A DNA stretch of 64,000 bases, from positions 1,488,001 to 1,552,000 of the forward strand of contig JAMWBK010000003.1 in assembly GCA_029953675.1 (NCBI GenBank). Direction: 5' to 3'. The notes below the pieces were generated by a model. The model made no database searches and had not been told where the DNA came from. It worked only from the letters and a program-made list of their open reading frames with translations. Positions 4,829 to 61,600 of this stretch are shown in pieces; within the stretch, counting starts at the first letter, position 1; each line of letters starts with the position of its first letter. The position numbers and the translations under genes are program-made. The DNA is from Rhodosorus marinus CCMP1338. Taxonomy: Eukaryota > Plantae > Rhodophyta.

Positions 4829-5999
4829 CTCCACAACCAACAAGGAAGAACTCAACACCAACTCAACGCAACCACAAGAAAAACGGAAAAAAAACACTAG
4901 TACCCCTACAAATTTAAACCTCTCCCTTTTCAATCAACCCACGGCCCCCCCTTCCGGTCTTCCCCACCTTCCCACCAGCTTCCCGACGGCTCCCTTTAAG
5001 AAACCTTCAAGAGCAACCCCAAAGCTCTTTTTTTTTTCACGCCTCCGGTGCGAAGGCGAATAATCCACCTCCATACCCACACAAAAAAAAAGATATTTTT
5101 GACAATGGAATCCAATTCTACCCCCCTTTTCTTCGCCCTATTACGTTGCATAGATTAACTTACCCCTACTAGCAAAACAAAAAAACTTGTTTGCTTAATA
5201 ATAATGTAATATTTAGAAGGATATATTGATCTTATACTCAATGAATTACCCCAGATAAATCTGTGCTTCGCTCCTTTTTGAGTTTTCAACCACGTCAATA
5301 TATTAAGGTTTAGGGTGAAGGGGTGAGGGGTGGGGTGTGAACACTTTGTGTACGTACAAATAAGGTTTTACGTTTGAATTAGAAAGGTTTTTTTAGTTTG
5401 TTGGATATTGGTGAGGACCGGGGGAATCTTTCTGGATCGGTCAGGACGGTGTTCTTATTTCTTTTGTTTGATGAGAGAAAATTAGGCCGTTAGTTGAGAG
5501 TCTTTTTTGAGAAGAAAATAGACCTTTTTGGTTTTTCCGGATGATCATTTGTTTTGCTTAATTTTAGAGGGGTTTCTCATGTCTTGTTTTGTTTTGTTTT
5601 TGAAGTACACCTGTGGCAAATCTTGTTGGGGAGGGAGGGACACTAGTGACACTTCGAGGTGCATGAAAAGTAGAAACGGGGGGGGGAGGGAACCCGTCAT
5701 CTGGTCTCAAGCGTATTTCTATTTTACAAAGGGTTTTTCCCTGAGCGAGCGACTTTACTCTCTGGGCGTAAATAAGTTTTAGAATGGTACCATAGTTAAG
5801 AGTTAGCCAAAAAAAAAAGCATAGACCTCGTGCTTCGCACGAGTCCCGTGAATCCTAAAATACCGTCAACGGAGGATGCTAGACCTGTTCATATCTGAGC
5901 AGATTCTTCTACGCGTCTATAGATGCACATTTTTGCTATGGGAAGCCACTGTTTCCACAGTAGCGAGGCTGTTCTGTCAAAGCCGTCAGCGATTGTGAA

Positions 6000-23636: not shown

Positions 23637-25668
23637 ATGCTGGCCTGTGGGCGTTCTCGTTTCCGCTTACTGGCGAGCGTCCGGAAGAGGTGGCTCACAC
23701 GGGACCCCGCCAGCGGTGATCGTCCGGGTGGTGGAGTTGTGCATACAATTAGGGATGAGAGGGACGCTCCTGATTTGATTGTCGAGCAAGGAAAGAAAAA
23801 ATCTTCTCATGTCGCGGAACTGCTCTTTGAATCCGCTCTCAGGGAGAGTAATCCCGGAGACGCACGTAGACTTTATGATGCACTGCTGGAGGTTTATGCA
23901 CATCGTCGTGATTCAAAGGGTGCCCTTTCACTGCTGAGACGGATGCAAGCGGCGGGTATACACATGAAACCCTACACCTTTTCTTACGCAATCCGGGCCT
24001 GTGTTCAAGAACCCAAAAGTGCAATGGATCTTTTCTTGAGGATGAAGGATGCTGGGTTCAAGCCGACGACCTTTATCTACAATACGGTGATGAGGTCTCT
24101 CGTGAACGATACAAAGCGCTCCGGAGACACTCGCTTTAGACACACGAAAGAGATAGGCATGGTTGAGTCTCTCCGGGAGGAGATGCGAGAAAACGGCTTG
24201 ACGCCAACAATCCATACCTATGGGGTGCTGCTTTTTTGCTATAGTAAAGCCGGCGAGGTGGAGAAAGCCGAACAACTCTATGCAATGCTAGTTTCTGAGA
24301 AAATACCGATGGAAGCCACGATCATTAATACGATGCTACAAATGAGAATTGAGCATGGACTCAATCCTATGCCACTTCTGGAAAGTATGCATAAGTTTGG
24401 GTAAGTAGTTTCTTTCGCAGTCTCGTCTTCACATCCAATCCGTTAGGGGAAGCTAGCTTCTAGCTTGTAACCATACGCGATATCTCAAAGTCCTCGGGTG
24501 GCCTAAATTCCGTCTCTTGACTCTTCAGATTGAAACCGGATCCGCGAACGTTCTCGGCGATTGCAAAAGGATGCACCATAACTGGAAATAATGGACTGGC
24601 GGTAAAGATGTTCAGGGAGCTGAAGAATCCTGACATTGAGGCTTGGGGCAGTTTATTGCGCTGCTTTGTTTCGGCGCGGGATGTGGAAGGCGCGGAGCGT
24701 GCCTTTAAGGAGATTCTTGCTGTCGGATTGCAACCGAATGGGTTCATTATGACGAACATGGTCATGCTCTATTCGAACTTGCACCTAGAGTCGAAAGTGA
24801 GGAAGTGGGTGGAGAAGGCGATGACGATGAATCTGGGAAAGCGACCGGTGCAGATCTGCCGAACGCTGTTGATTAAAACGTTGGCTAGAACCGGTGACTG
24901 TGTTGCAGCTGAGAACGAGTTCAACAAGCTATGGAAAGAGAACTCTGCTGATATTGTGGTGGTGATCACCATCATGAACATGTATTCGAAACTTAAACAA
25001 GCGGACAAAGCCCTCGCCCTGTTCGAGCAGACAAAGCATAGGGACGACTTTGGAAACAGGGAATCCCTGTACAACTTGGTGATGGATGCGCTTTGCCGTA
25101 CCGGGGAAATCGAGCGGGCGAAAATGTTTGCTACCGAGCTGACTAGCGTCGTACCGAAGCCTTCAATCTTCTTCTATACTCAGCTGGTCAAGGTAAGCAA
25201 CAATTGCAAAGGCAAGATGTGGACGTTGAGGAATACGCGGAAGCCCAGGCGGACGGGGCTACTTGTTTAGCTTTGAACCAAACGCAATTCCTCTCTTGCG
25301 CTCTACGACCTCAGATCCATGGCTTGGAATACAACGCGAAAGGAATTGAGCAGGTGGTTCGTGTTGTTCGAGACGCCGGGCTTCGCCCATGTACAGAGTT
25401 TTACAACACTTTAGTTGTATATCAAGGACTGCTGGGTAATTTTGAAGATGCGGAAGCATACCTTGAGGAAGCCCGAAGAAACAACCTGGCTTCCCGAAAA
25501 GTCTGGACTAGTCTCGTTAGAGTGTACGTGAAGGGAATGAAACTTGAACGGGCAGAACGGGCACGGGATAGGATGGAGGCTGCTGGCTTTCGCCTGGATG
25601 GCAGGACTAGAGAGCGGCTGGAACAGTTTAGAGAAAGTCGACGAAGTGGCGAACTGAGCTTAATTTAA
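23637..25668 (+). CDS. P-type pentatricopeptide-repeat protein 1 (probably mitochondrial), about 593 aa
   Basis: Exons 23637-24400, 24529-25192 and 25315-25668. Repeated ~35-aa motifs (KPYTFSYAIRAC, KPTTFIYNTVMRSL, TPTIHTYGVLLFCY, QPNGFIMTNMVMLY). The N-terminus is Arg-rich with no acidic residues. Confidence 0.9.
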
Positions 25669-26189
25669 GATGCGTGATTCGATTTCATTTGAGGAGTCGT
25701 TGGTGAACTAGTTAATGTTGGAATATGGTAAATTATTAAGTACTCTCGAGGTCGGTGTGTGAGCCACTCACTGCAAAGGAGCAAGTAGTTATTACGGTGG
25801 CCAAACGTGCGCGAAGAGGATTGCTTCACTCAGTAGGATCGGGCGAGGAGAAACCTTTTGAAGCGGATGTTGACGCTGCCTGTTCCGCCCCAAACTCACA
25901 AAACGCGGCAGTTGCATGAACGAACATAGTTGCCACGCGTAGGCAAAGCAGTTCCAGCAAGAGAGTGAGAGCCCCAACGTCTCAATTCCACCCTCATTTG
26001 AAGTAGGAAACCCAACTCTGCCACAGATTTCCAGTCGCAAGGTCGATGCCGCAACTCAGTTGTCCCCAGAGATTCATATGAACACCGTCCACACCTCCAA
26101 CCGTCCCAAACCCCAATATCGTCCCAACTCCGTCCCGTGTCCCAATCCATTCAAAACAAACTCCACAACCAACTCCCCCTTCATCTATC

Positions 26190-26420
26190 GCACCTAAGAA
26201 AAAACCCTAAATATATAAATATTTTAAAACTATTTCGTTCGTCCAGTCCAACGGGCCAAGGGGAGCAAAACTTTTGAACTTTACGAATGTCAGTTTTTGA
26301 GTGAGATAGCCGGAGTTCATTGACATTGAACGGGGTGCCCAGCGTTCATAAATATTTGAACTTTTTACGTGGCCATGGAAAAGAGGTGGTAAGAGGCGAA
26401 TGTTAATTGGAGAGGCCTTG
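26190..26420. promoter_or_regulatory. Probable bidirectional promoter
   Basis: AT-rich core (aaaccctaaatatataaata) flanked on the left by a C/A-rich tract and on the right by a G/T-rich tract leading into PPR2. Confidence 0.4.
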
Positions 26421-26682
26421 GGGGTATGTATATAGAACGGTTCGGATAGAAAGTTTGGGAGGGTAGGAAGGTGTGATGATTGTGATTGTGAATTATGATG
26501 CTCAAAGAAATGTCAAGCTAGTCTTATTCCTGTTCAGGAATGCAATTCGACCGTGATTGTGAGGGCAGGTGGATTGTGTTCCTGTTGAGGGTCGGAGCTT
26601 TCGGAGTTGGCAAGCTGGAGGGATTGGAACATGAGCAATTGACAGTTTAGGTCGGATTGATCTTTGCTAACTTAGTATCTAA

Positions 26683-28623
26683 ATGTTCGTTAACGTAGCT
26701 TCCTATGAAACCGGAAGGTTTGGAGGTGGACGGCGGGCCGTGTGTTTTGTGGATGTGAAATGTGACAGAGTTCTGAGCGAGTTTGTGCGAAATAGTAGGG
26801 GCATTCCTTCAGGGGAGGCGCTGAGGAGAGTTCAGGCAATTGAGGCTGAATGTGCACGAAATCCGAAGGTGTTTTCAAAACTTATTGACCTCTTCCACGA
26901 CAAGTATGGCGTTGAAGAAGCTGAGGAGGTGTGGAGATGGCTGGTTGAGGTTGGCGGGGTGGAACCAAACCTGAACCACTTTAATGTGAAGATGAGGTTG
27001 TACTCGCAGGGACTAGAGGCAGACAAGATGATCGGATTGAAGAAGAGTATGGAGGAGAACGGAATCAGGCTCGATGTGGTGTCCTACACCATGCTGATTC
27101 ACGTGCTCGGAAAATGCGGCCAGTTGGAAGAAGCTGAGAGATTAGTTAGCGAGATGCAGGGAAAAGGCATCAAACCCAACGTTGTGACGTTCAATTCACT
27201 CCTCACGTCGCTCTCGGAACACAACGACACGGCTCGGTTTCGACACTGGAAGAGCGTTATGAGGAAGCTGAGAATACCTGAAAACGCTGTCACGTCACAC
27301 ATTCTGGTCGACTCGCATGTTAGACTCGGCCAGCTCATTCAAGCGGAGAATCTCATCTCCGACATGATCAGAAGAAAAAAAAGGGTGCGTACTTTGTTAA
27401 AGTGATATTTAACCTTCGGCGGACCCCAAGCGATATGGCTGTTTTCGGGTCCATCAGCACGCGCTAGGCAACTCAATCATCGGATCTACCAGGGCCATAG
27501 GCCATGCTTCTTATGGAAGCTGATACGTCATTGGAGAATCTGAACAAAGTACTCCGTATCAATAATACTTTTAGGTCAAACCGGAGTCGCTCACCAGTGT
27601 TATGAACAGCTACGCGTCGAGAGGAGACATAGATGGCGTAGAAAGGTGTAGGTTGTTATTCCTGGCGGCTGGCCTTCCGCTTGGAGAGTATGCGTTCAAT
27701 GTAAGGTTTCGACGACTTCCCCTATATTTTTGGTGCTAGCCCTCTGCCGTAGGTTCACCAAGGCTTAAAATCTCCGGCTGTGTTTCGAATTTGTTCATTA
27801 ACCTTTCCAGGTTCTCCTGAAGGCTTTTCTTAGAGCTGGAGATGCAGAAGGCATGATCCGAACGTCCAAAATGATGCGCTCTGCCAAGATTGAACCTAAT
27901 GCCGTAACGTTTACCACGCTGATGAAGGCGTGCTCGGCAAAAGGAGATGTTCGTCGTGTTCATAGATGCTTTAATCAGATGCTGCGTTTTGGAATCAAGC
28001 CGGATCGGATTACGTACAATACTCTCCTGAACTCACTTCGCGTTGCGGGAGATTTTCGGAATGTTGAGAAATATGTGAAGATGATGGAGAGATCCGGCAT
28101 CAACCCTGACGTCGTTACGTACAACACACTTTTGAGTTTGTATTCTGAATGTGGGAGGATTGCCGACGTGTGTTCAGTTGATACGTTCGTGTACTAGGAG
28201 CTGGGAGTATAATTCTGAACACGATCTTTGGTTGTCCCGTAGGTCAAGAATATCAGTACAAAAATGAGAGAAGCTAACATTGCACATACGGAGTTCACGT
28301 ATAACACTCTCATCAGCGCATACGCAAATGCCGGGGATGTAGATTCCGCGGAGGAAGAGTTCTACAATCTCAAAGCGAGTGAAATTCGGCCAACTGTAGT
28401 AACTCTCACCGCGCTGATCCACGCGCACGCCAAGAACGAGAACTTTTTTGTGGCGGAAAGAATTCTTCGCCAGATGAAGGACACCTATGGAGTGCGACCA
28501 AACCACGTCACTTACTCATGCCTCATACACGCCATGCTCAAACACGATGCAAAAGATCGTGCGATGAAGCTGTATGAGGAAGCTAAATCCCAGGGCTTCA
28601 AGATCAATGTCAAAACGATCTAG
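26683..28623 (+). CDS. P-type PPR protein 2 (probably plastid)
   Basis: Three ORF-track pieces plus a small exon (VKPESLTSVMNSY...YAFN from 27575) are joined by GT-AG introns. Classic repeats: DVVSYTMLIHVLGKCGQLEEA, PNVVTFNSLL, PDRITYNTLL, PDVVTYNTLL, PNHVTYSCLI. Confidence 0.9.
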
Positions 28624-29276: not shown

Positions 29277-31684
29277 CTAGCTGTCTAGGTCGACGCCTCG
29301 TTCTAGAGAGTATCTGGAGAGTTTGTCCGCGAGGTCCTTCTCCCCATGCTGGCGGAGGCTGTGAATGACTTGATTCACCGATCGCGCATCCCAATCTTCC
29401 GTTTTCTGAAGCGTTCTCAGCGCTCGAATTGGCTGTCTTTTACGCAGGTACACAGCTATCAGTGCCCTCTTGGTATAATTGTCCGGTTGTAGCTTCCGCA
29501 TCTGCATTTCTCGGAGGACGTCATCCGGCCGGATAGACTTTATCCGAAGCATTGTGTTGAAAATCGCTGTATCTGCAAAAACTCCCTCGACATCCATTTC
29601 CTGAAGAAGCCGGTAGGGAGTTTCCCTTTTGGTGTTGGGGTCCCTCGCGAGAAGGACCATGCACATTGAAAACGTGGCAACATCGAACTTGATCAGCTGG
29701 TTTCGCATATCGCCCAAGACGTGCTTTGCCGCTGTGTGCCTTCGAGCTACAATTAAAGCTTGAACCGCAGCATTGTACACAGCTACGTCCGACCCCATCT
29801 GCTTCGCTTTTCGAAAGAGCCTTAGCACCTAACCGGACAAATGAGAACAGCAACAGGACCATCAGGGTAAACATGGCCGAAAGGCCAGCCTCCTGTCACA
29901 GTCTCTCTCAAGCACAACGCACCTGCTCAACATCGCCTGCTTTACCCAGTTCGCGCATCGCTTGTGTGATTTCCAGCAGGGACGAAGGTTCTTTCTCCAA
30001 TCCTGCAAAGGTCCCTCCCGTTCCTCTCTTCCTCTTCTTATTAGCAATAATCCAGTCTGTTACATGATCACTTCTTATACTAGATCCATGCATCTCCTCC
30101 ATCAGGGACTCTACTTCCTCGCCAATTCTAGACCTTATCGAAATCATTGTATTGTAGATGGCAAGATCAGGTGGGATACGCAGAACCTTCATTTCCCTGA
30201 AGAGCCCCTCCGCTTCGTCAAACTCTCCCGCACGATTACACGCTACGATCATCGCACAATACGCATGCTGATCCGGTTCGATCTAAACGAGACAAAGCAC
30301 AACCAAAGGAGCCAGCCGTCAGCACTTAATAGAGAGCTATTAGGACAACTTGAAATGCGTATAATACCCCATGCTCTCGAATCCGCTCAAACGCCTCCTT
30401 CGCAAGTCCAAATTCACGATCATTCGCATACAGTTGAATAAACGCGGTGAACGTAAACACATCAGGATGAATTCCATCTTCCTTCATCCTATTTCGGATA
30501 TTCGAGACAACCATTACAGTGAGCAAACTTCCTAGATTTCAAACTCGTAACAGAATGGATACTTCCCAAGTCAAAATGAAACCCAGCTGCCCTGTGGATG
30601 GGGGGGGTCTGGGGTGTCTTGATGGGCTACGCAGGATGGCCGAATTGCTACAGCCTCTAGTCACGAGTTCTCGCAGGGAACGAGCATACGCTTACCTTTC
30701 GAAGATCGTTTCAGCAGCACTGACGTTTCGAGCTCTCTTCGCTGCGCCGATTGCGACATTGTACAAAACGAGGTCGGGCTTCAAGTTAGCATCGTGAAGT
30801 CTCGAGAAACACCTTTGAAAAGTCACAGGGCGACATTTGGAGAAGACGGAAGGGGTGAAGGGATGCGATTGTCGTCTCTTAGCAACTGAAAACTGACAGT
30901 TCTTCATCGTGGTGTTGTTTCGTAGTGTTGGGGGGGGGGATGGTAGATACCTTTTAACCTCCTCAAATCTGTTGGCTGTGGCATATCCTCTTATGAGGGA
31001 TGTAAAAATGTGAACGTCTGGTTGGACGGTTTCCATCGACATCATAGTACGAAGGACGCTTTCAGCTGCTGGCATCTTGTTGAGTTTGGCGTAGGTATCA
31101 ATGAGAATCCCGAAAGAAATGATATCCGGCTTGACTTCAGAATTGCTGCCATTCAGCATCCCGTAGATAATGTCATCGATGGCCTGTACCATCCTCGCCT
31201 TGGAGTATCCCTTCATGAGAGCGTTGTATGCGCTAATATCAGCAGTCCGCTCAGTCTCCGTCTCGAACTCTCGTAAAACCGCTTCGGCGACTTGTGGTGA
31301 TGACTTTCTACAGAACTCCTGAACCAGTCGAACCAAATCCCCATCAAGAAAATCATCCTTCAATCTTGACTTCCTAAACGCTTCCAACGCGAGATCATTC
31401 TTCCCCGATTTCAGCAGCCTGATAATGTCCCGAGCCCGTTCATTTCGGTTTCTCGTTAGATCTTCCTCCTCATCCGCAGCCGAATCCCCATCCTCTCCCA
31501 GAACTTGATCCTCTGGTCGTTCCCAATTTCCAAACGACGACCCACTTAAACACAAACGACTTCTTCCTCTACTTCCATTTACATTACCATACCCAACGAA
31601 CCCTTTACAAGCAGACCTTCTCGAACCTCCGCAAACCCCAACTGAAGCAACGCTCAGATGAATGAATCCAAGTCCCATAACCAT
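29277..31684 (-). CDS. P-type PPR protein 3 (probably plastid), about 5 exons
   Basis: Repeats ADISAYNALMKGY, PDIISFGILIDTY, PDVHIFTSLIRGY, PDLVLYNVAI, PDVFTFTAFIQLY, PDLAIYNTMI. Intron 30813-30950 and further GT-AG introns. Transit-peptide-like N-terminus MGLGFIHLSVASVG. Confidence 0.9.
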
Positions 31685-38382: not shown

Positions 38383-40760
38383 ATGTCTGGTGGTGTGAGG
38401 TTTGAGCTTGGGCTTCAGAAGGAGGCTTTGTTGGGTGTATCTCAAACGGGTATGAGATTGGCTGAGGCGATTGAACGTGGATCGTTGGAGGAGGCGGTTG
38501 CTAGAGCTGGAGAGGTGGCTGGACAGCTACGGTTGGATTCCGTGGCATCGTTGCCGATCGAGTTGTATAGCGATGTCCATATAGCGGTTGGGGAGGAGCT
38601 CCAGGTTCTTCAGAGATGGATCGCTTTGAAACGTAGTACACGGTTTTCCGAGAAAGCGCTCCGAAAAGCTCAGGAAAATGCACAAATTGTTCCCAGGCTT
38701 TACGTTACCGTGGTCGTGATCGGGGCTTCCTGCGAGATCAATCCTCCCTCAGCTGTGTATACCTACTCCGACTTGATGGACCTTCTGACAGGTGTTCAGG
38801 ATCCCATCAGAGGGCTCTTTCTTCGCGCTTTCGTCACTCAACATCTACGAAAGTCCTTTTCGGAACTCGGAAGCGCGGAATCGATCAAGTTGTTGATTCG
38901 CAACCTGATTGAAATGACGAGGCTTTGGGTTCGGACCTCTCCGAAGAAGGGAAAGAAGGAAGCACGAGTTCTTATAGGACAAACTCTGTCCGCTCTTGGT
39001 CGACTGGATCTGGATACCGAAACGTACGCAAGGACAGTCCTTCCACGGCTCACGGAAATGATCCTGAGCTATTCCGATCCCCTTGCACAAGAGTACATCG
39101 CCGAGTGTATCGTGCAAGTATTCTCTGACGAGCTTCATCTAAGCACACTGGATAGTCTTCTTGGGATGTGTCAGGGACTGTCTCGTGGTGTTCGCTTGAG
39201 GATCGTAATATCAGCTCTGACCGAACGACTCGGATCGTTTGTCCTACAGTCTCCAGAGAATGCCAAGATGGCCGATAATGCTGAGGCTTTCCAGACGCTA
39301 ACGAGTCATCTACCCGCGATAGAAGCTCGAATGGGAGATAAGCTCAGCGTTGTCGATCGAATAGGCATTTACCTCGCTGTACTCCGCTATACGCTGAAAG
39401 CTGAGCCGGAGCGATTGGAAAACGTCGATAAAGTACTTGTTTATGCCCTTCAGGCCGTCCCCGAGGAGGGCTTTGAACAAGGATCTGAGCAGGAAGAGCT
39501 CGTCGGAAGCGCTCTTACTGAGCCACTCATTGCGAACAAAAGTTTGGCCGCAGCTCTAAAGCTCGAAAGCTATAGGGAGCTGGCCGCGAGGTTGTCCTCA
39601 CAGACCCGAAGGATAGTGGCGGCCACGATGCTCAAATCTGTTACGCAGTTCTCAGCTTGCTTGTCGGACGTGGAAGACATGGAACGGCTTTTCGAACTGG
39701 TGGGTGCACTTGTCGAGGACGAAAGCGCAGAAGATGTTGATGAGGATGCACAGAACCTGGTGGCTAGAATCGTTTTCTTGTTGGATGATTCGGATCCCGT
39801 GAGATTGTTTCAGTTCTATCAGGTGCTGCGCAAGAGACTGGCAAGGGGTGGTTCGAAGAAAGCTCGAATCACGTTCCCATCGCTTATTATTGCCTGTCTA
39901 CGTCTCACAGTGCGACTCTCTAGTAACGAGGAGGAATTCCTAAGGGTTTGTCAATTCTCTATCGAAACCATCAGTGCTCTTGACGAATCAGACCCGCAGC
40001 TTGCACTGAAGATGTATTTAGAAGGGGTCGCTGCGGCAGCTAGCTCTGTGCGGCTTGCGTCACAGGTCATGTATGACTTTGCTGCTCACGCGATCGTCCT
40101 TTACGAGGAGCACATGAGCAATCACGCTCGACTTGGCTATGAAATGATCGTGCTCATCCTTGGCGCAATTGGAGCAACAGCAACGTCCTTCCACGACACT
40201 GACTTCAAGACTCTAACTAACCGATTGTGTAAGCACTCGGCTTGCCTTCCTGACGACCTCCAAAGGTAATTCTTCCCCCCCCCGCCCCCACCGTCATCCT
40301 CGCCCCTCCTACCAGTATCCCAGCTGAACCTAAGACTTTACTGTGCGCCGGGAACAGATGTATCGCGCTTTGCTTGTGTGCGAGGACCTATTGGAAAGCT
40401 TCCATGTTGCGGAGAGAACAGGATCCTTCCTGTTCAGTACTTGATAAGCAGGTTGTTCATTGTCTGATTAAGGCTAGATCAATAGCAACGTCAAGACCGT
40501 CCCGTCAAGAGAAGGGCACCACTCTTCTCGAAGTCTTCGGAACAGTCTCATTCCTGTGGGAATCCAGGTGTCCTCTGAACTACAAGGAGTGGGTGATTGA
40601 TATGCACGAGGAGGTGCAAAACTGCTTCGGAGCCAATGATTCCAAGACAGCTCTGTTAACGGCGCACATTGAGAGATTCAACGCCCAACGATTTTCGCGC
40701 CTATCGGCGTCCATCAAGGACAGCGAAGAGCTCAGCGTCCCCAACGGTTCCCTTCACTGA
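38383..40760 (+). CDS. VPS35: Vps35-family retromer subunit (divergent), about 761 aa
   Basis: IVPRLYV, GVQDPIRGLFLRAF, LIRNLIEMTRLWVR, LIGQTLSAL, VLPRLTEMI..YSDPLAQEYIAECIVQVFSDELHL.TL. Intron 40266-40357 gives QR|CIALCLCARTYW (about QCR.V..CSHLFW). Confidence 0.85.
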
Positions 40761-41520: not shown

Positions 41521-43408
41521 TTATGGAAGCGATTTGCCAATGCAATGCCTCATGTTCCCAATATGGGGGTGCGACTGAATCACACCCTGACCTTTGTACT
41601 GCACATGTGCAGCCGTACCCAACTCGGCCACTCTATGCATCTCCTCGCTTCGGATTTGTATCTCAAGGGGAAACTCACCAACATCCGTCTGTATAGCCAC
41701 TGTGGTGTGCAGTGATTGGTATCTGTACAAGGCAATCAAAAATCCAACCAGGTGGGTTAGCAAATTCGCTCCCAACCACGGTAAGAGGTTTTCGCGTACG
41801 TACCCATTCTCCTTCGGATGCTTAATATAATCCTTGACCTTCATGTCCTTGTACTCATCCCACTTGCCCTGTACGAGCCCCATAGCTCTGTAGCAGGAGA
41901 TCTCACCATCACTGTCAGAAACGCGTCCACCCCATCGTGGGGTAATAATAACTCGAAGTGCAAGCACGTCCAAAACTTCGTCCAGTGAAAGGCCTTTCTT
42001 CTCCATCTTCTTGTGGATAGAATACAGGCTCTTTTGCCTCCCGGACACTTTAACACAAGACACCTGGGGTACAACAAATGACGGCGAACGTCAACACTCA
42101 TTCACATCAACAACTACTCATATCAGGTTCTTGGGCTTCGGCAAGGCTATGTACTTACATACGAGCGTAGCTGGGGATCGTCCCACAGCAGAGACTCTAC
42201 CTTTCTTCTAGACTCGTCTAGGACCTCAGCAAACAAAGATGTCTTCTCTTTCACAGCTTCTTTCAATCTTTCGTACTCCTCTGGGTGACTAACTTCAAAT
42301 GCCCGCTCCTCCAGTTCCCGCTGCAACACCGCGAACCCGCATGTATGTGCGAGAGGGGCATAGAAAGAGAGGGTTAAATCCGCAAAGGACTTGAGCCTTG
42401 TTCTCGAGGACTCATCCAAAGACGAGATTGACCAGCGGAGGTGCGTCAACGCGTTCACAAGCTCAATCGCCACAATTCGAAAATCACAAAGGTTTTCCAA
42501 GACCTCACTCAGCTGTGCCTCGGAGAGCTTTTCAGAGGAAGTATTCCTCATCAACCTCTCGTGAAGGCCCTTGCGAGATTCCACGAGCCGGGTTACCTCC
42601 GGGTCCAGCAGAGACGTAAGCTGGCTCGATGGTTTTCTCAAGGCTGAGACGACACCTGCCAACAGAGTCTTGTGATCGAGCTCCAGGTCGGCAAGGAGCG
42701 AGAAGACACCCTTACACCGTACCAATTCATCTTTGGACGTGCAACTCTCGATCGCGAGGGTCAGCGCCTTCCGAGCCTTGTATTTCGCCATACTGTTCAG
42801 GTATGCCAGCTTCTCATCCAATTCTCCGAAAGCAGACTCGAACGCAGGGAAAGTTACTCCAGAACCCAAACCCACTCGCGCGGAATTTCCGCTCGGCAGG
42901 GTTTTCGCTGGGGTGAGGGAAGCCAGGTTCGAAACCGGCGAGAAAACATATCTACTTATGGTACTCCTCATCACCTCATCCTCCTCCTGCATAGAAAGCA
43001 CAATAGGCGTGTTTAAGCGCATTTTCTTCTTCTGTCGCAAGTTGGTTGTTGAAGCTCGCGGAGAAAGTTCTCTCCTCTTACCTCAGAGTCCTCTCCGGCG
43101 AGAAATGGCGTCCCAGGATCGGTATAAAACGGTATACTCGCTGGCGAATAACCGGAAAACGAGAAATTACCGGTTACCGGCTCCTCAACGTCAGTTACGG
43201 ACATCATCATTTCCCGCTTTTGAAACCCATGCCCTGCTCGAAAGTCCGGCAACTGCCCCCTTACTGAGCTTGGCGTGTTTGATGCTGACCCATGAAAGAA
43301 GGAACCCGAAGAAGAAGAACATATCTCACTCTTCGAAGATGGAATTGGCATGGGAGCCGACTTGCCAATCGGCTCCAAAAAAGCTGCCCGCTGTCCCTCC
43401 GCATTCAT
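41521..43408 (-). CDS. RSH: RelA/SpoT homolog, (p)ppGpp synthetase with degenerate HD domain and no TGS/ACT, about 538 aa
   Basis: Exons 43408-43082, 42986-42159, 42063-41804 and 41722-41521. Synthetase motifs GRQKSLYSIHKKM, DVLALRVI, KDYIKHPKENG|YQSLHT, EIQIRSEEMH..AELGTAAH..YK are intact. The HD site reads LLAGVVSAL instead of AAGLLHD. Confidence 0.92.
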
Positions 43409-47938: not shown

Positions 47939-50331
47939 GGTTTATGCCGAACGTGGATTCTACCAGTACGGGTCGCTCCAGCTCAGCTCGTTAGCGCATT
48001 CGCGACCGCCGTCAAGAAGACCGAGCGTTGGGTAGGACTACTTTCCCAGCTGGTCAGCCAAGGTGGCGAATTCTTTGATTGTGCACACGCTTTCAATCAC
48101 CCTGTAAAATACAAAATTTTCGAATTCGACTGGTGCTCAGACAAAGAGGGGGATCCTAACGGATACGAAGAGAAGCGGGAAGCATTGAAGCGGAACCGCA
48201 CAAATCTGCACAAGTTCGCGCAGTTTGTGAACGTTAGGGGCGGACGAGATTTCATGGCATATCGGCGCCAAGCTCATCGGACCATTGTCACCGAATGAGG
48301 ACCGAGAGGGACTACTAAGATGATACTTTGGCGAATCAGGCAGAATTCCTCATCTCGTCGTCGCGTCGAACTGGCCCTAGGAGGAATCGTCGAACGAGAA
48401 GTATGAGGGAGGAATTGTTCAAAACGATCCGAGCCGATGACAGAGATTCTGAAAACATTTCCAAGTCTCTTCTCCCTCGTGACGGTAACAGGGTATACAC
48501 GTAGTAGTACGTATAAGGGCTAGCTTCCTTGTGAGGATCGCATCCATCAAGCACTCATAGCTCGCACTTCGCCCCATCGCTCTGGAACCCACTGTTTTCT
48601 CTCGCGGAGAACAGGTTCGCGAATCTAGGGGCCCTGCAATCATACGGAGACGTTTTAAACCAGAGTACGTTCAGTCCTGTCGGCGGTAGTAACCATCATA
48701 TCAAAGGTCAGCGCCCATCGCCTGCTATTAAAAAGCCTTCTGCGCAAGTTACCAACGTATCACATATACCCCGGATAATAGGGCTTAAGCAACCAACCGA
48801 ACCACGCCATTCACTTCGCGAACGTGATCAGACAATATGACCCAAGCGCCCAAGCCAGCCAAGCCAACCACACCATCTACGTCGCTAGGTGCCGACACTC
48901 TCAGACAAGTTGCTACGCTATCGATCCGCAACTGCGAAAACCACTTGCGACAGTGAGATTATCCTTTTGTTATAAAAAAAATATTAAAAACAGATAAACC
49001 CAACTTTACTTGCGTATGATTTGTCTACTCATCTACTAAGCTATTTCTACTTGGTAAATAATAACAATAAACAATATTAAACTATTAATAATAAACTAGC
49101 TAGAATCATTTGAAGTAACATAATTGGTAAGAAACAAAGCTTTTGACTGAAGTAAATAATTTAATATAATACACTACTATTTGTTCCTCTGGCAGTTTAG
49201 GGGTTATACCCCATCTATGTCCTTAGAATAAAGGATTTATTTACCATAAATAGAAATAGTGCACTATGCCGGTAGAACTATTAGAGGGGGGCATATCGAA
49301 GCAACGAGCACGAGGAACGAAATATTTTAGTATATAGACACTAATTTACCAATTATATGTCGTTAAATACTAAATAATAAAGGAACTTTTTGAGACCTGG
49401 TGCAAGAGGCGACCTCAGGACCGCCCACAATTAAATTACCAAAAAATCATAAAACAATTTGTGTTTTTTAATATATTTTGTTTTCATGTCCATGTGAATA
49501 TATCCGAATAGATAAGATCGACCCCTTTACCCCTCCATGCAATTTCCATTGAAAAGCTTCCTTTCGCTCAAAGTTTAGAGTTAAAGGAAGAATTCTAGTA
49601 AACAAAATAGTGCCACCCTACTTCAGGGGGGTAAATTGAACCCCAAACAAAAAACCTAATTCTCATGTTTTCTATTTATATTTGAAGAGTCTCCTTAAAT
49701 ATCTTGTTCTACTCCTTGAAAACTATTTCTTCTAAATGAATTCTCTTGTCATGCGAGTTGAGAAGCCCCAAAAAAGTTTTGGGATTTTTATTGGCTCAAA
49801 AATGGGCCTCCCTAAAATTTGAATAGCTACCGTTCTTTTGTAGATAAGTCTCCTTCAAAAATAGTTTCGTTTTTAAAGGTAATTAGGAGACAATGATTCT
49901 TGTTTTTGAAAAAGAGCATGATTTGGATTCAACTGAGCATTTTCTAGGTTTTTTTTTTGTTCGTCGTTCCTTTCGAGATGGGATGTGTTGGTTGTTCGAG
50001 AGTGGGATGGAGAAATGTCTATGTGGGAGGGAAGGGGGGGGTTTGTGGGGGGTGGGGAGGGGGAGGCGGAAGGGAAGTCGTGGGAAGGAATGGTTTGCAG
50101 GTGGTGAGGTTTCTTGACTATTGAAATAGTTATGTGACGATGAAAGATTTCAGCAAAAGTTTTTACGAAATACTGGAATTTACCACCTTGACGTGCTTTT
50201 GAGATTTCGTCGTGCTGGTTTTTACGTGCTTTTCGGGGGGTGTTTCTGCGAGAAGCGGGGTTTGAAGGAGTGTTTTTGGGTGGGATCATAGTACTATGAT
50301 GGTATAAGTTGTTTTGGTATTGTAGATAAGA

Positions 50332-51926
50332 ATGATGGCGTTGCGAAGAAATCATGACGGGACTAGTGATCATGACGGAAAGGATGAGGAATCGACGTTT
50401 CTGAACGAGGACTTTGAACTCGGGGTTATTGAAAATGCGTATCGAAGCGGGACGATGCCCAGGCTCACGGGTGTGTCCTCGGGGGCGCCATTGCCTGGAA
50501 TGAACTTTACTAATGAAATGGAGGGAAGGCCAAATTCGCATGCGATGAGTGCTGGTGGTCTGTTCGCGGACGAGCTCGATGACTTTGACCCTATGCATGA
50601 CACTACATCCAGACTGCCCATTGATGGAACAGAACCAAGACAGGAAAACGGATTAATTAGCGACGAGGCTGGCGGAAAAGTTCCCTATGCAAATGTAAGC
50701 TTATTTCCGACGAGAAAATGTTATCCTCCGTCTTGCGAATGAGCAACATCGCTTTCCCTTGTGAGTTGTGTCGAGAGAACTAATATCTCTTGGTCTGCTT
50801 TAAAAACACAGGGAACTACGAAATCGCTCGCTGGTTCAAAGCGCAGCCACGACAGCTTGGACAATGACAATGACGACGACGACTCGCATTCGTTTTCGAA
50901 ACTAACAAAAACGGGAAAGGATTCGAACAAGAGCCACACACGGAAATGCCGAGAGAAGGTCAACGACAAATTCAAGCAGCTTCTTGAGGAGTTGCCAATG
51001 CCTCCGGCGGGAATTGAACTTCAGCACAAAGCCCAGATCCTGGATTACACGATAAAGACCCTCAAGGAACTGTCAAACCGGAAGACCTCTCTGGAAACTG
51101 AGTTGGCCTTCAGCAGCAAGAAGAACCTGCTTAGATGGGTTGATAATGTCATTTCCAACGCAAAAAACTTCCCTGATGCGGTGAAACCCTTCTTGGATAT
51201 GTTCTGCACCAAAAAGGGATGGAAGTATGCTGAGCTTTGGCTACCAGCGAAGAACGTGGGCGAAACGACTCACGGGAATCAGAGAGAAGTAAGAAAATGC
51301 ATGCAGTCCCTTGTCCCTTGTTGGGGTCCGAGCAAAAAAAAAAAAAATATGCATTTGCGCTTCTGGATTCATGCCGGCCACCTCGTGTGGGGGTTTTGCT
51401 CTTAAGAAACGCTAACGCGGAGTTGCTGCTGTTTTTCTCTTGCCTGCCAGATGCTTCTCCGGCTTCGTCGATGGGTTCTGAACAGATCACTGGGAGGTGA
51501 GGAACGTGAGAATCTCTTGAAGTTCGCTGCGAAGAGTGAACACTTCACTTTCAACCCACGCGTGGGTGTGCCTGGAAGAGTTTTTAGCACGCTCAGACCA
51601 GAGTGGCTACCCCAGCTTGACAATGATGAAACTTTTGTTCGTGCGTCTGAGGCCTCAGAGTTCGGCTTGAATGTCTGCCTAGCAGGTATGTTTAAACGAG
51701 TTCGGAGGACGCAACGTGGGTATGGTAGTCAAGTTGGACAGACCCTGAATGTGAATGCCTGGACCTTTTTGCTTCGTTAGTGCCGGTTGTGGTCCGCGGA
51801 CAAGTCGCCGCGGTGACTGTCTTCTTTGACACGGAGGTCAGGGACTATGACGCGGATTGTCTAGACCTTGCGATTGACATTGCCAGTCTCACTGGTAACG
51901 CTTATGGAGCCAAGACTGGTTTTTAG
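50332..51926 (+). CDS. bHLH transcription factor with C-terminal GAF-like domain, about 406 aa
   Basis: Exons 50332-50694, 50812-51288, 51451-51685 and 51781-51926. bHLH: HTRKCREKVNDKFKQLLEELP...HKAQILDYTIKTLKEL. GAF-like: GWKYAELWLP...GVPGRVFSTLRPEWL...FVRASEASEFGLNVCLA|VPVVVRGQVAAVTVFF. Confidence 0.85.
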
Positions 51927-57061: not shown

Positions 57062-58699
57062 TCAATCTACACGGGTCACCTCCCAAGAAAATCCGGAAGC
57101 GTTCGCGGCTTCTCTCGTCGACGGTGCCACCGGGCCCGCTAAGGGAGGGAAATCTGCAGCACTGTTATAATCAGCAACGGGAACCCTTGCACCAGCCGTA
57201 CTCGGAGCTTGCGGTCTGTACTGTTCTTGCGGTTGGGTTGAGTACGTTGTACCCTCAAGTCCACGATCGCCGTCGTTTGAAGCTACTCGCGCCTGTCCCA
57301 AGTAGGCGTCTTGCGGACCCAATAAGTCGTAACCGGACATCGTCGGAACACTGGCCTTCTGTCCAAAGTCTGCCTGCTGGTCCCCGGTGCTCGACATATC
57401 AACATGCCCGCCCTTGACTGGGTACGTTTGGTTCATCCCGGCCATGTCGCTAACACCATCAACAACACCATGGTTGGCCGAGCTAGGGATCCGAGGGTTT
57501 ACCCACATCCATTCTTCAGGCCCGACTATGCCTCTTCTACTCATGCCCTATTGCAACCCAACACGGAAAGAATAAACAACACTCAGATAATCCAATTTTT
57601 GCCAATGAGACTTTGGCCAACCCTTGCTCACCGTGAATGGGTCATGTCCGACCGGAACGAATGGCGGTGTGGGCGTAACCCAGCGGTGATAACTCCGGTC
57701 AAAGTCCGGATCATAAATGTCATTCTCCCATTGTTGCCTCGGCTTCCTATTCGAAGTGGGTGAGTCAACCTGTGCATCACTTTGCGGGAGCGAGTCCGAG
57801 CGAAGAGAATTCCTCTCCGCAGCGGACTGTTTCGGAACGGCACACTCTCCTCGTCCAATGGGGCCCGGAGACTCGACGCGCTGTGAAACTCCAACACTAG
57901 AACTCGACGGTGGTTGAACCCCGTCAGCAACGGCGCGACGCGTGAAGCCTCTAGATCCATCTACTGGACCAAGAGGCTGTCTCGGCCTTGCCACTGGCTG
58001 CTTTCCATCGCTTTCGACAGAACTGTCCCTGCCCGAGTCACTGTTTTGGAATATTCTAGCACGTGCTCTGGAAAGACGAGTGAAGAGGGGGGCAGCAGAA
58101 ACGTGAGCATTTGAGCGCACATCCACTGACCAATGCGGCGGTACTATTTTTGAAAATGGCACTTACTTTGCATACTCCTCCTCTGTGATAGTGCGAATAG
58201 TTCCAGAGTTCTGGTTTTTCTTATGCACATTAGATCCCTTGCCGTGAGCGTGGTCAGACTCACGCCTTCTGATGGACATAGTCTTCATTGCACTGTCCAG
58301 TTTATCTGTGTCCCGTGATTGCTTTTGAAGGGACATATCGATATCGCTTAGTCGTGTCTTCGGAATCGCGGTAGCTTCAGTTTTGATTAATATAAGCGCC
58401 CTTGCTTCATCCACGCCAGAGTTGGATGCAGGCGCCACTAGTTTGTTCTCCAGATTATATCTTACAGCCACCTTGTGAACAATCTTTCTCTGAAAGGCGT
58501 TCTTCGGTGGGACCTCCAAACGCTGCAGTAACCCATCCCTCACAAAATTGTCGAGATTTGCTTCAAGTTTCACCAGGCTTCCTCTGTTCTTGGGGTTTTG
58601 CAATAAGCTTAGCAGAAACTCGTCAACTACCGGGGATTCATTCGAGTCGTTGATGGGACTCTCTGCACCCTCCGTCCACGCACTTCTTCGCATCTCCAT
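57062..58699 (-). CDS. R3H-SUZ domain RNA-binding protein (R3HDM/ARPP21/encore-like), about 484 aa
   Basis: VDEFLLSLLQNPKNR..LVKLEA...F...; R3H motif NAFQRKIVHKVAVRYNL; SUZ-like MSIRRR...TEEEYAK|ARARIF. Introns 58068-58166 and 57548-57631. Confidence 0.85.
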
Positions 58700-61600
58700 T
58701 GCAGATACCACACGATTCAGACGCCCAGAAGAGATCCCCGTTCCACTCCCCCCCGAAAAGCAAGCACCTGCTTGCTCCTCAACGAACTCGGCGGGAAACA
58801 CGCTTAACAACGTCCCCCTCTCAAACACATTCTGCTCACAACGGACACATCTTTTCACGCGGCCTAGAGTGGTCAAATCCCTCCACAATCCTCCTCCCAA
58901 CAAAAGTCCAGGGGACAAACAAAAGCGACCCGGCAACTCCCACCACCAAAAGCAAACTCTACTAGAGCCCAACCCCTTTTCACACAAACCGCTTAGGCGA
59001 AGAAGGATCAAAAGAACAAAACTTACTATATATATATCCTCCGCAGCTTAACAGCCTATTCTATCCGTCCCCATCCTTACTGAACTCATCATATACCAAG
59101 ACCCCTAAAGACTCGACTACACCCACAAAACAATAGAAACCAAATATTCCTCGTATAGCATATTGTCCTACTCCATAAACACAAACAGATACACACACAC
59201 ACCTACCTATCCTTCCCTACCCCTCACAACTCCAACCTTTCCCACTGACAGCAGCTCCTCTTCTCCCAAGACATACAAGGAATCCATTCGCACAAGTGTG
59301 TCCCTGTTCAAGCAACCAGCAACACACCCTCCAACGCCAGAGGATTCCAAAAATTCCACTGTACAAATATTATTATTATATGTCATAAATATACTTTATA
59401 AACTTACGTCCTAATTCGATCTAATTTCGGCAACTGCGTTTTGGGCAATCTTAGCATATTCATAGTACCAGAGGATCATTTGTTTTCTTATGGTATAGAT
59501 TTTAGGGAATATTGTCAATAAATAGAAAACTATCTTTAAATAAGAAATAGTTGAATCTATTTTTATAATGTATGTAGATATGATAATATAAACTTAAGAA
59601 AGGGTATATCTTTACGTCCAGTCGGTTTTCGCTCCCAAAAACCGAGCGTTGGGGAGTTACCACTGTTGTTCTTCTTTATTCGATTATTTTTTAAAGGATG
59701 AACTCGTCCACGGTTTGGGGGGTGACATTTGACACCCCTCCTCAGCTTCTTTTCATAGCAGCCCATCAAAATACTATCATTTTGTGATAGGTGGGCACGA
59801 CCCCACCCACTACCCCATAAAATGATTTCAGCAAAGAAGTTTATTAGAATAAACAAAGGTATTTCTTGAAGCGGAATAATCTCTAGAGGGGTAGATAGAA
59901 ATTCTGTTCGATATTTGCATGGAGAAATAGTGATTGCGATCCTTGGTTTTGAGTTCACGAGGGATGGTTATATTGACTTATTCGAGTTTAATGATTGAAG
60001 TCGAGGCCTGTATTTTTGTACTCGGATGAGGGGGATATTCAGTGCAATTGGCCTTTCCGATTTTATAGTATAATAAAAATAATATGGATATTTGAAAGCG
60101 TTTGATAGATATTTAGTAGGGGGTATTGCTAGGCTGTTTGCTTCCGAGCGTAAAACAAAAAATACATCAAGGGCTTTTTGCCGGAGCTCCTAACCCCTCG
60201 TAGCTTACCCGCTTTGAAAGGGGAAACCATCCCCTTACTATAGTAAGCAATGGAATATGAAAGAACGAGAAAAAACCATACTTACTCATATTCCTCCCCC
60301 CCTGCCAAATAGATTGAATTGTCTCCGGTTGAAACTCTCGTATTGCACCCTTTTGGCTGTGTTGGTATTGTTCTCCCTTTATCGATGTGCAGAGGAAGCT
60401 GTGGGCGAGCGTAGGTTGGTCGGGCTGGCTCACTTTGGTAGAACGTTTGCCAGATGACATCCAGATGCACTAGAAAACGCATACATGGAGTTACCTCAGC
60501 CCATATCCACATTCACATCTAGGCGAACAGGCCATGTTCGCGAACACTGGATTCTGATTAGAGACAAGAGGGTCTCTTTGATGAGTCATGATTGTGATAG
60601 TTTCCTCCTCTAGCCTAAACCAACCGCGCGAGACTAACAGGTCATGTAGGGAATCTTGAAGGCCGAATATGAGGTTCTACAAATGTTCGCTAAAACACCA
60701 AGGGTTTTTGAAGTGCGCAGTTCAAGAGCTCGAGATCTAGGCATGCATCAGCAGCATATCCATAGCACCAAGCACAATAAAGAATTGAACCGATGAAATC
60801 CATTCTCGCCGGGATGAAAATCCTGGCCCCTAATGCGAGCGGCGATCAGGCCTTCAGGCCAGTCATACAGGGGAAACACACACACTCTCTCTCTCTCTCG
60901 CACACAGTCATCCAAAAGACGCAACCAGATCAAACAAAAATAGCAGCTTCAGGCAGGTGGGCATCCCAAACCTAAATCGATTCTATCATACCTCTTAGCC
61001 AGAATCGTTAACCAAACATTCCTCGTCCAAGTCAAGACCTCCATCCACTACTGTTTGGTTTCCGGTAAACCCACCAGGCAAGACGAAAGACAAGACAAGT
61101 GTCTCCATCACCAGTTCCCCAACACTTCCCCTCTTAAACTCTTCCCTCAAACTCAAAACGGCCACCTTTATAAGCACACAATTTTTCCTCAAGACAGACT
61201 CCCTCCCCAGCCCTCAAATAACAAGAATAAACTTTAAAAAGCCTCACTTTCCGGCAATACCAAAAAAACCTTTCTAAACCCTACAAAAATCCCGCCCCCT
61301 CAAATACCTTCAAAACCAAACCTTAATGTAACAGGAAAAGGAAGAAGAAGGGGTTAAAATGAGACCCGTAAGAAGAATTTTCTTATATTTAAATGCGTAA
61401 ATATTATTTCTGATTTTGTATTTTTGGTGTAGATCTACCCCTACCTTGATGTTGTTCTTATTTTTTAATTGTAAATATATAAGGGGGGGTATTAATTTTT
61501 TTGGATTTGATGAGGACGAGTATTTAGGGAGAAGCACGTCTTGTAGGAGGAGAAGGGGCCACTGCGACGAGAGGGTGGGAGTGGTGTGAGAAGAGTTTGG

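Follow-up and report, generated by a model that had tools for sequence, protein, structure and literature searches.

Transcription factors of the bHLH type are a major class of eukaryotic regulators. The signal-receiving partners known for them are PAS domains, leucine zippers, ACT-like domains and the MYC_N domain of plants. In plant bHLHs with a C-terminal ACT-like domain, a fold of the small-molecule-binding type controls dimerisation. As to GAF domains, published work reports that nitrate-dependent behaviour requires that of NLP7 and that nitrate is bound directly by NreA (PMC9310391). In red algae, bHLH genes are very scarce: Pires and Dolan (2010) report a single one in Cyanidioschyzon merolae, which they could place in no clade (PMC2839125).

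The locus described here lies at positions 50332-51926 on the forward strand of a stretch of 64,000 nucleotides from the red alga Rhodosorus marinus (the window). The encoded protein consists of an acidic, disordered N-terminus, an atypical helix-loop-helix and a GAF fold. We give about an even chance to the overall reading that it is a putative nuclear bHLH-GAF transcription factor of a red-algal family, in which the GAF receives a signal and is ligand-gated. An earlier note on this DNA had proposed the order of bHLH, helical connector and C-terminal GAF fold, and this order is borne out by Pfam, the family profile, AF2 and Foldseek. The motifs it quoted are all present (HTRKCREKVNDKF...KAQILDYTI, WKYAELW, GVPGRVFSTLRPEWL and FVRASEASEFGLNVCLAVP), the last of them straddling the junction between exons 3 and 4.

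An exhaustive profile search yields 118 proteins at E<=1e-30, and both the bHLH and the GAF half are covered in 123 of the 150 best cluster representatives. The GAF is C-terminal to the bHLH in 123/123 of these two-domain representatives; the position N-terminal to the bHLH, typical for MYC_N, is seen in none of them (0/123). All 13 named family members are Rhodophyta, from Galdieria to Gracilaria, and the family is likely, though not proven, to be confined to this group. Across the red-algal classes the architecture is kept, and it has diversified into several paralogous subfamilies; one paralogue of the present protein is KAJ8903037.1. The profile search uncovered a large bHLH-GAF family, for which no published description was found: literature searches on bHLH+GAF, bHLH-MYC_N+GAF, red-algal bHLH and NLP7+NreA gave none of the bHLH-GAF architecture, and two surveys of red-algal transcription factors mention bHLH and never GAF. 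No characterised example had been known to the earlier note either, and none turned up in the literature searched.

Gene model and expression

The gene runs exactly from its ATG to its TAG stop. Its four exons join to an open frame of 1221 nt, coding for 406 aa, and are separated by three GT-AG introns, whose donors are GTAAGC, GTAAGA and GTATGT and whose three acceptors all end in AG; an in-frame stop is present 5' of the ATG. All of the following features are on the forward strand. According to translation and splice sites, exon 1 (50332..50694, aa 1-121) opens with the start codon and encodes the larger part of the acidic N-terminus, which is predicted to be disordered. Intron 1 (50695..50811, 117 nt, GT-AG) is absent from MMETSP transcript P0001 and from the GenBank model. 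Exon 2 (50812..51288, aa 122-280) completes the disordered region, continues through the bHLH and the conserved junction and reaches into the GAF as far as its first two helices and its first strand. It is followed by intron 2 (51289..51450, 162 nt, GT-AG); the sister strain has an alternative transcript that keeps this intron. The central part of the GAF, including GVPGRVF, PEWL and FVRA, is encoded by exon 3 (51451..51685, aa 281-358). After intron 3 (51686..51780, 95 nt, GT-AG, phase 1), placed by its splice sites, exon 4 (51781..51926, aa 359-406 and the TAG stop) supplies the last two strands and the C-terminal helix.

GenBank entry KAJ8906717.1 (Rhodosorus marinus, "hypothetical protein", assembly GCA_029953675.1) is identical to the 406-aa model, and P0001 (405 aa) shows 97% identity over 100% of it. 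The gene is expressed and its model is correct; these two records confirm that its exons belong to one transcript. Scans of the whole window for tRNAs and Rfam families gave no match.

Reading through intron 2 leads to a stop at 51405. In the sister strain, P0002 (292 aa, MMETSP) terminates inside this intron, and P0014, from the same MMETSP transcript, begins precisely with M281, the codon that opens exon 3. Judging from the sequence, the intron-2-retained product would be a bHLH with just the start of the GAF. Such a protein might be signal-independent or act as a dominant negative.

Comparison with the sister strain places 11 of 12 substitutions in the disordered region (aa 1-157) and leaves a single one for the 249 structured residues (p = 1.8e-4, Fisher). 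This suggests that the structured part is under purifying selection, which we count, together with the breadth of the family, as support for the gene; such a pattern is far from what chance would give. The prediction of disorder for aa 1-157 derives from AF2 (pLDDT below 50). The region is acidic, with a pI of 4.6 and 30 D+E residues, and is a possible activation region.

The GAF fold and its possible signal

The bHLH and the GAF are linked by a short, highly conserved helical junction. On the basis of conservation and DSSP, this junction (ELA-F/L-SS-x3-L-x2-W, aa 217-231), together with the N-terminal helices of the GAF and its first strand (WKYAELW), is assigned to 51109..51288 on the forward strand. 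Over 113 family members, conservation is 85-99% for A220, S223, W230, W258, E262 and W264, and 85-95% for the junction residues A220, S223 and W230 alone.

The C-terminal region is modelled as a GAF domain with high confidence: the AF2 model of the GAF alone (aa 221-406) reaches a pLDDT of 93.6 and a pTM of 0.89, and agrees with the GAF fold, in which an antiparallel sheet is covered by the N- and C-terminal helices on one face and by a helical lid on the opposite face. In Foldseek, dozens of solved GAF domains match it with probability 1.0 and TM 0.6-0.7, among which are ligand-bound structures (Lcd1 with cAMP, PDE6 with cGMP, and NreA). The Pfam families considered were the GAF domain (PF01590 / PF13185), the NLP GAF (PF22922) and bHLH-MYC_N (PF14215). 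The protein exceeds the cutoff for Pfam GAF (25.8 bits vs 22.4) and stays slightly under that for GAF_2 (27.3 vs 28.6 bits); across 109 members GAF_2 matches 69 and GAF 48. A search of PDB sequences with the single sequence returned a GAF match only, and a marginal one.

The closest relatives consisting of a GAF only are the GAFs of bacterial multi-sensor signalling proteins (PAS-GAF-HD-GYP, histidine kinases). The motif set GxPGRV, PEW, FxRA and AVP also occurs in bacterial GAFs to which the MYC_N and the NLP model both give a score, so the common GAF subtype named in the earlier note is a fair description. The most conserved GAF residues are E262, W264, R323, W332, R344 and P360. Since these also occur in the consensus shared with MYC_N-type and bacterial GAFs, they may represent the structural core and not a ligand site.

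Two specific ligand sites were considered and dropped. A PDE-type cGMP site is rejected because the NKFDE motif is absent. A bilin or light sensor was considered because red algae are not known to have phytochromes; it was set aside, as phytochrome GAFs come below rank 28 in Foldseek and no canonical chromophore-Cys motif is seen on reading the sequence.

In the reading that we prefer, the GAF, placed directly on the end of helix 2, would be the dimer-specifying and signal-receiving module, like PAS in bHLH-PAS factors. A small metabolite would be its most likely occupant, and the conserved junction would transmit the occupied state so as to alter dimer geometry, DNA binding or activation. Counted for a sensor were the sensing context of the closest GAF-only relatives, which sit in bacterial signalling proteins, and the ligand-bound GAF structures among the Foldseek matches. 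Counted against it was that the best eukaryotic structural and profile matches are the N-terminal domains of MYC3 and EGL3, which dock JAZ/MYB and are not known to bind metabolites. Also counted against it was the domain order: most one-component sensors have the sensor domain N-terminal to the output domain, and here the sensor is C-terminal, the opposite of that usual order. The 'one-component ligand sensor' proposed in the earlier note, possibly for a nutrient or small anion, is plausible, with docking of a partner protein as an equally good rival because MYC_N, to which the domain is structurally closest, serves to dock proteins.

According to this rival, the GAF serves as a docking platform as in plant MYC/GL3-type bHLHs, accepting a repressor, a co-activator or a MYB-type partner and no small molecule; regulation would then come from partner availability. 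Searching Foldseek with the high-confidence GAF model, ranks 1-9 are all N-terminal domains of EGL3 or MYC3 (E 6e-9 to 1e-8, TM 0.58-0.68), and several of these structures are complexes with WER, CPC or JAZ peptides. The Pfam bHLH-MYC_N score of the protein is just under the cutoff (28.4 vs 30.2 bits, model positions 90-156 of 181), and 48 of the 109 members match this family at E<=0.01, the best at 2.1e-9. In addition, the family profile and EGL3 can be aligned over the GxPG...P.WL...F.R..LA block, and the plant and the red-algal domain are both attached to a bHLH. Nonetheless, the order is reversed, with the domain C-terminal here and N-terminal in plants, and the Foldseek E-values and TM-scores of MYC3/EGL3 are just marginally better than those of bacterial ligand-binding GAFs. 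Furthermore, the bHLH part has no special similarity to that of plant MYC2, which is solved and in the PDB but absent from the profile matches at E<=10. Weighing these points, we hold docking as a tentative and somewhat doubtful explanation.

It might be argued that the red-algal bHLH-GAF and the plant MYC_N-bHLH go back to one Archaeplastida pairing. The red form would then be the ancestral, metabolite-gated one and the first bHLH one-component sensor that uses GAF and not PAS, and the land-plant domain would later have become a JAZ/MYB docking site. We consider this scenario rather unlikely.

If red-algal bHLHs do carry a MYC_N-like C-terminal GAF, this would amount to a new sensor/output architecture and offer a lead on the origin of the JAZ/MYB-binding domain of plant MYC/GL3 factors. 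It would also provide candidate regulators for nori, agarophytes and the extremophilic Cyanidiales, where transcriptional control is poorly known.

Another explanation is that the GAF is a constitutive module for dimerisation or partner selection only, similar to a leucine zipper or an ACT-like domain, and takes no signal input. GAF domains commonly dimerise through their terminal helices, the GAF follows helix 2 directly via the conserved junction, and a species with several paralogous subfamilies would require rules of pairing. A fold of about 185 residues with a strongly conserved lid (GxPGRV...PEW...FxRA) is however large for dimerisation alone, and the closest non-bHLH relatives are the GAFs of bacterial signalling proteins, which makes this explanation quite improbable.

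The domain had originally been called an NLP-type GAF. What stands of this is the common GAF subtype, as judged from the motifs; the NLP-type label is weakly supported, as the best folds are MYC3/EGL3 and Pfam GAF_NLP (PF22922) gives no match on the protein. GAF_NLP matches 2 of 109 members at E<=0.01 (and one of 11 close relatives at E = 0.21), against 48/109 for bHLH-MYC_N and 69/109 for GAF_2. RWP-RK and PB1 were found in none of the 109 members, and together with the GAF_NLP result this leads us to reject NLP membership. A nitrate sensor resembling NLP7 or NreA, in which nitrate in the GAF pocket activates the factor, is accordingly judged very unlikely. It could draw on the motifs shared with a GAF subtype that includes NLPs and on the presence of NreA among the fold matches (Foldseek ranks 27-34), but apart from the missing GAF_NLP, RWP-RK and PB1 domains, the match of NreA to the family profile reaches only E = 0.26. 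Nitrate is one ligand candidate only, and nothing in the analysis favours it specifically.

The atypical bHLH

The bHLH (aa 156-220) is encoded by 50914..51108 on the forward strand and comprises the basic region GKDSNKSHTRKCR, helix 1 extending to L182-P183, a loop (184-193) and helix 2 (aa 194-220). AF2 predicts helices at 163-181 and 194-220, with mean pLDDT values of 85-95 per ten-residue block. Pfam HLH (PF00010) does not match the protein, even at E<=10, and what identifies the bHLH is therefore the AF2 topology, together with the family profile and the relatives. When the family profile is compared to the PDB, the top matches are all bHLHs, namely Max (E 0.012), MITF, HES1, USF2 and HIF (both HIF-2alpha and HIF-1alpha are included), and the alignments with Max, MITF, HES1 and USF2 run from end to end. 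Among the relatives, 25 of 109 match Pfam HLH at E<=0.01 (best 1.5e-6). A helix-loop-helix was defined by two amphipathic helices with a loop and a hydrophobic core of F20, L23, L27-P28 and I/L in helix 2. These elements are present here, and F175, L178, L182, P183, K194 and L198 are conserved at 88-96% in the 113 family members. The bHLH proposed in the earlier note is therefore retained as regards topology, family profile and relatives; a canonical type is not, given the missing Pfam HLH match and E-box Glu.

In the alignment with Max, T164 takes the position of Glu9, C167 that of Arg12 and N160 that of His5, whereas R165 (R10) and R168 (R13) are kept. The E-box-binding set His5/Glu9/Arg13 is thus incomplete, and Glu9 is found in none of the subfamilies inspected. 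Conservation in the basic region amounts to 81% for H163 and 98% for R168 (113 members), and its 13 residues carry five Lys/Arg. We infer that the protein binds DNA as a dimer through its HLH, where the target would probably be non-canonical, i.e. a non-E-box or half-site sequence. With Glu9 lost, binding could be weak or partner-dependent. The changes to Thr9 and Cys12 predict a new DNA specificity, and the Cys in the basic region might confer redox sensitivity. An HLH that does not bind DNA itself, but inhibits in the manner of Id or serves another bHLH as its obligate partner, would agree with the missing Glu9 and Pfam HLH match, but is most improbable in view of the strongly conserved, Lys/Arg-containing basic region and of the class I bHLH-PAS factors HIF and SIM, which bind DNA also without Glu9.

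Comparison with known systems

Like the NIN-like proteins (NLP7: GAF - RWP-RK - PB1), the Rhodosorus protein is a eukaryotic transcription factor with a GAF of the same broad subtype (GLPGRVF...PEW). It differs from NLP7 in having no RWP-RK, PB1 or GAF_NLP match, and in its GAF being C-terminal to the DNA-binding domain.

The bacterial GAF proteins (the NifA-like activators Nlh1/Nlh2, Lcd1, PtsP, NreA, PAS-GAF-HD-GYP proteins and histidine kinases) provide its closest GAF-only sequence relatives and good fold matches, and they too couple a GAF to an output domain through a helix. Unlike in these proteins, the output is a eukaryotic bHLH lying N-terminal to the GAF, and the gene is nuclear with spliceosomal introns.

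Among eukaryotic factors, the bHLH-PAS proteins (HIF, AhR, SIM, ARNT, CLOCK and diatom RITMO1) likewise carry a sensory or dimerisation fold C-terminal to their bHLH, and class I (HIF, SIM) shares the absence of Glu9, with HIF-2alpha and HIF-1alpha among the profile matches. The fold in Rhodosorus is GAF and not PAS, however, and a single domain instead of the tandem PAS-A and PAS-B; PAS-family domains gave no match in the protein or in its 109 relatives. The plant ACT-like bHLHs may be comparable in that a small-molecule-type fold follows the bHLH in both, an ACT fold there and a GAF in Rhodosorus.

Plant MYC2/3/4, GL3/EGL3 and TT8 combine, as seen from the EGL3 alignment, a bHLH with a GAF-like alpha/beta domain that has G-x-PG, P-x-W and F-x-R-x-x-A. 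The W-x-Y-A-x-x-W motif, whose red-algal copy was read from the window sequence, is present in the plant proteins as well. The plant domain binds JAZ and MYB peptides. Differences concern the order, which is GAF-like domain then bHLH in plants and bHLH then GAF in Rhodosorus, and the basic region: the plant factors have the canonical H-E-R for G-box/E-box sites, whereas the Rhodosorus protein has Thr9 and Cys12.

Gene structure, transcripts and genomic setting

The gene lies on the plus strand of the window at 50332-51926 and consists of four exons (50332-50694, 50812-51288, 51451-51685 and 51781-51926). Its introns of 117, 162 and 95 nt have donors GTAAGC, GTAAGA and GTATGT, and all acceptors end in AG. 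After splicing a 1221-nt frame is obtained that encodes 406 amino acids and terminates at TAG, while an in-frame stop is located 5' of the ATG. All motif strings quoted in the earlier note are found in this translation. That the exons form one transcript also holds: the MMETSP transcript product P0001 (405 aa) shows 97% identity over the whole length, which independently confirms the splicing. Every residue of the predicted protein is identical to KAJ8906717.1 ("hypothetical protein NDN08_003206", Rhodosorus marinus; UniRef name "BHLH domain-containing protein"). This identity, together with the position on contig JAMWBK010000003.1 (assembly GCA_029953675.1), shows that the window comes from the nuclear genome of a red alga.

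Neighbouring genes are of ordinary nuclear types, among them a Vps35 retromer subunit (38383-40269, plus strand, E 5e-106), an RRM and CCHC zinc-knuckle protein (3683-4933, minus), an R3H-domain protein (58163-59011, minus) and, according to the public record, a minus-strand cytochrome b5 gene approximately 1 kb downstream. PPR-repeat ORFs are present at 23637-27405 (plus) and 30692-31684 (minus); the three on the plus strand probably belong to a single large PPR gene as its exons. An HD_4-domain ORF (42147-43040, minus, E 7e-11) could encode a (p)ppGpp hydrolase domain of RelA/SpoT-homologue type, here in the nuclear genome of a red alga. Scans of the 64-kb window for tRNAs and Rfam families found none. 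Around 230-350 nt 5' of the start codon, a G-rich tract at 49985-50100 (plus) with runs GGGG, GGGGGG and GGGAAGG could be a G-quadruplex-capable promoter or 5'-UTR element. Antisense to exon 1 and the upstream region lies a 241-aa ORF (49873-50598, minus), whose low-complexity translation is rich in Pro, Ser and His; it is probably spurious.

An RNA that keeps intron 2 is present in the sister strain, since MMETSP transcript 32976 carries two ORFs: P0002 (292 aa), which begins at the start codon and ends inside intron 2 (window 51289-51450), and P0014 (126 aa), whose N-terminus is exactly M281, the codon with which exon 3 opens. Read-through in the window meets a stop at 51405, and the product would comprise the bHLH and only the start of the GAF. 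Retention is either regulated or splicing noise. Profile matches of the relatives P0086, P0087, P0088, P0091, P0101 and P0154 end at approximately 128-143, the equivalent of the exon 2/intron 2 boundary, which suggests that the intron position is conserved and that gene callers read through it.

An atypical bHLH followed by a GAF fold

A full-length AlphaFold2 prediction based on an 11-sequence alignment divides the protein in two. Residues 1-157 are acidic (pI 4.6) with pLDDT below 50, whereas from residue 160 onward the mean per ten-residue block is mostly 85-95, with a dip at the 274-277 loop. The predicted order is helix 163-181, loop 182-193, helix 194-220, a three-residue gap, helices 224-237 and 241-256, a beta-alpha-beta core and a long closing C-terminal helix (383-404). 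Residues 1-157 account for 11 of the 12 amino-acid differences with the sister strain, the other 249 for one (Fisher p = 1.8e-4); the structured C-terminal two-thirds is therefore more strongly constrained.

Three findings back the bHLH described in the earlier note. Pfam HLH does not match the protein even at E<=10, but a bHLH-region profile built from nine relatives and run against PDB finds Max (E 0.012), MITF, HES-1, USF2, HIF-2alpha and HIF-1alpha, the top of the list being all bHLH. Moreover, Pfam HLH matches 25 of 109 family members (E<=0.01, best E 1.5e-6), and the core positions F175, L178, L182-P183, K194 and L198 are 88-96% conserved (n=113). Aligned to Max, T164 occupies the position of the E-box-contacting Glu9 and C167 that of Arg12, while R165 (R10) and R168 (R13) are retained and H163 is conserved in the family. 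Position 9 is Thr, Ser or another non-acidic residue, never Glu, across the inspected subfamilies. By the usual plant and animal criteria we take this to be a basic but non-E-box type; it recalls the class I members of the bHLH-PAS group (HIF and SIM, for example), from which Glu9 is likewise absent. The cysteine of the K-C-R at residues 166-168 (window 50944-50952) is invariant in the main subfamily and replaced by Ser or Tyr in others. Its Lys-Cys-Arg setting resembles the redox-sensitive KCR in Fos/Jun basic regions.

For the C-terminal domain, the GAF fold is confirmed at the level of the predicted model, so that one refuting outcome named in the earlier note, a C-terminal region that does not model as a GAF, did not occur. 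A second AlphaFold2 run (residues 222-406, 17 diverse relatives) gave pLDDT 93.6, pTM 0.89 and a secondary-structure order typical of GAF. Foldseek against PDB places Arabidopsis EGL3/MYC3 N-terminal domains at ranks 1-9 (E 6e-9 to 1e-8, TM 0.58-0.68), closely followed by the bacterial GAFs Nlh2, Lcd1 with cAMP and PtsP, with NreA at rank 27; the full-length model leaves this picture unchanged. Sequence profiles order the PDB matches as Lcd1 (7e-4), Nlh1 (5e-3), EGL3 (0.01) and NreA (0.26). In Pfam, the protein scores 25.8 bits for GAF (cutoff 22.4), 27.3 for GAF_2 (cutoff 28.6) and 28.4 for bHLH-MYC_N (cutoff 30.2).

A red-algal family and its GAF subtype

A word-indexed search found 12 relatives only. 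An exhaustive HMM search with a trimmed profile spanning bHLH to GAF yielded 6232 proteins at E<=1e-3 and 118 at E<=1e-30, and both profile halves are covered in 123 of the best 150 cluster representatives. All named members are red algae: Rhodosorus marinus (paralogues KAJ8906717.1 and KAJ8903037.1), Purpureofilum, Porphyra umbilicalis (OSX80661.1), Hildenbrandia rubra, Gracilaria domingensis (three, two annotated "GAF-like protein"), Gracilariopsis chorda, Agarophyton chilense and Galdieria phlegrea. As these span four classes (Cyanidiophyceae, Stylonematophyceae, Bangiophyceae and Florideophyceae), the architecture is probably as old as the red-algal ancestor. Confinement to red algae is likely, although most clusters come from metagenome or SRA assemblies without species names. 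Between the several subfamilies the GxPG lid varies, as does the basic region (HTRKCR, HTKMCRDRLN, HSKRYRDN, HTRKSREKLN or RRRRDVRAARD type). The second R. marinus paralogue (P0084, 297 aa, on another contig) has diverged: its basic region reads HTQNSR and its lid DLIGRV. It may pair with KAJ8906717.1 as a heterodimer.

The GAF had been called NLP-type, which stands for the common motif subtype but not for the family assignment: Pfam GAF_NLP does not match the protein and finds 2 of 109 members (E<=0.01), against 69 for GAF_2 and 48 each for GAF and bHLH-MYC_N. RWP-RK, PB1 and PAS domains are absent from all 109. Among proteins that share only the GAF, the exhaustive search puts nearest the GAFs found in large bacterial PAS-GAF-HD-GYP proteins and histidine kinases. 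Because these match GAF_2, bHLH-MYC_N and GAF_NLP simultaneously, NLP GAFs, plant MYC_N and the red-algal domain all fall into one subtype (GxPGRV, PEW, FxRA, AVP), within which the red-algal GAF looks nearer to MYC_N than to NLP.

Proposed coupling and signal, and a parallel

Architecture, conservation and expression are established by the results above; how the factor works is inferred from here on. Few stretches are as well conserved as the helix 2-GAF junction E-L-A-[LF]-S-S-x3-L-x2-W at residues 217-231 (A220 85%, S223 92%, W230 95%; n=113), and conservation this strong points to rigid coupling of bHLH and GAF. GAF domains usually dimerise via terminal helices. The most economical model would make the factor a dimer: its GAF would lengthen and specify the HLH dimer and may pass a signal on to it, as PAS does in bHLH-PAS proteins. 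We favour a small molecule as this putative signal, since the nearest non-bHLH relatives occur in bacterial sensor proteins and ligand-bound GAFs fit the fold well. A docked protein partner is a serious alternative: the domains with which MYC3 and EGL3 bind JAZ and MYB peptides match fold and profile equally well. No result singles out nitrate. The most conserved GAF residues may be structural, as they recur in the consensus motifs of MYC_N-type and bacterial GAFs.

The gene and its relatives are already in public databases under automatic names ("hypothetical", "BHLH domain-containing", "GAF-like"). In agreement with the earlier note, which knew of no characterised example, no description of a bHLH-GAF was found in a full-text literature search that covered few subscription journals. 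Pires and Dolan (2010) (PMC2839125) report a single bHLH from Cyanidioschyzon merolae, which they could not place, and apparently make no mention of GAF; bHLH, but never GAF, comes up in two recent surveys of red-algal transcription factors. The probable novelty is a bHLH paired with another kind of regulatory domain. Most interesting is the parallel with the plant MYC_N-bHLH factors, where the same kind of pairing occurs in reversed order, the GAF-like domain preceding the bHLH.
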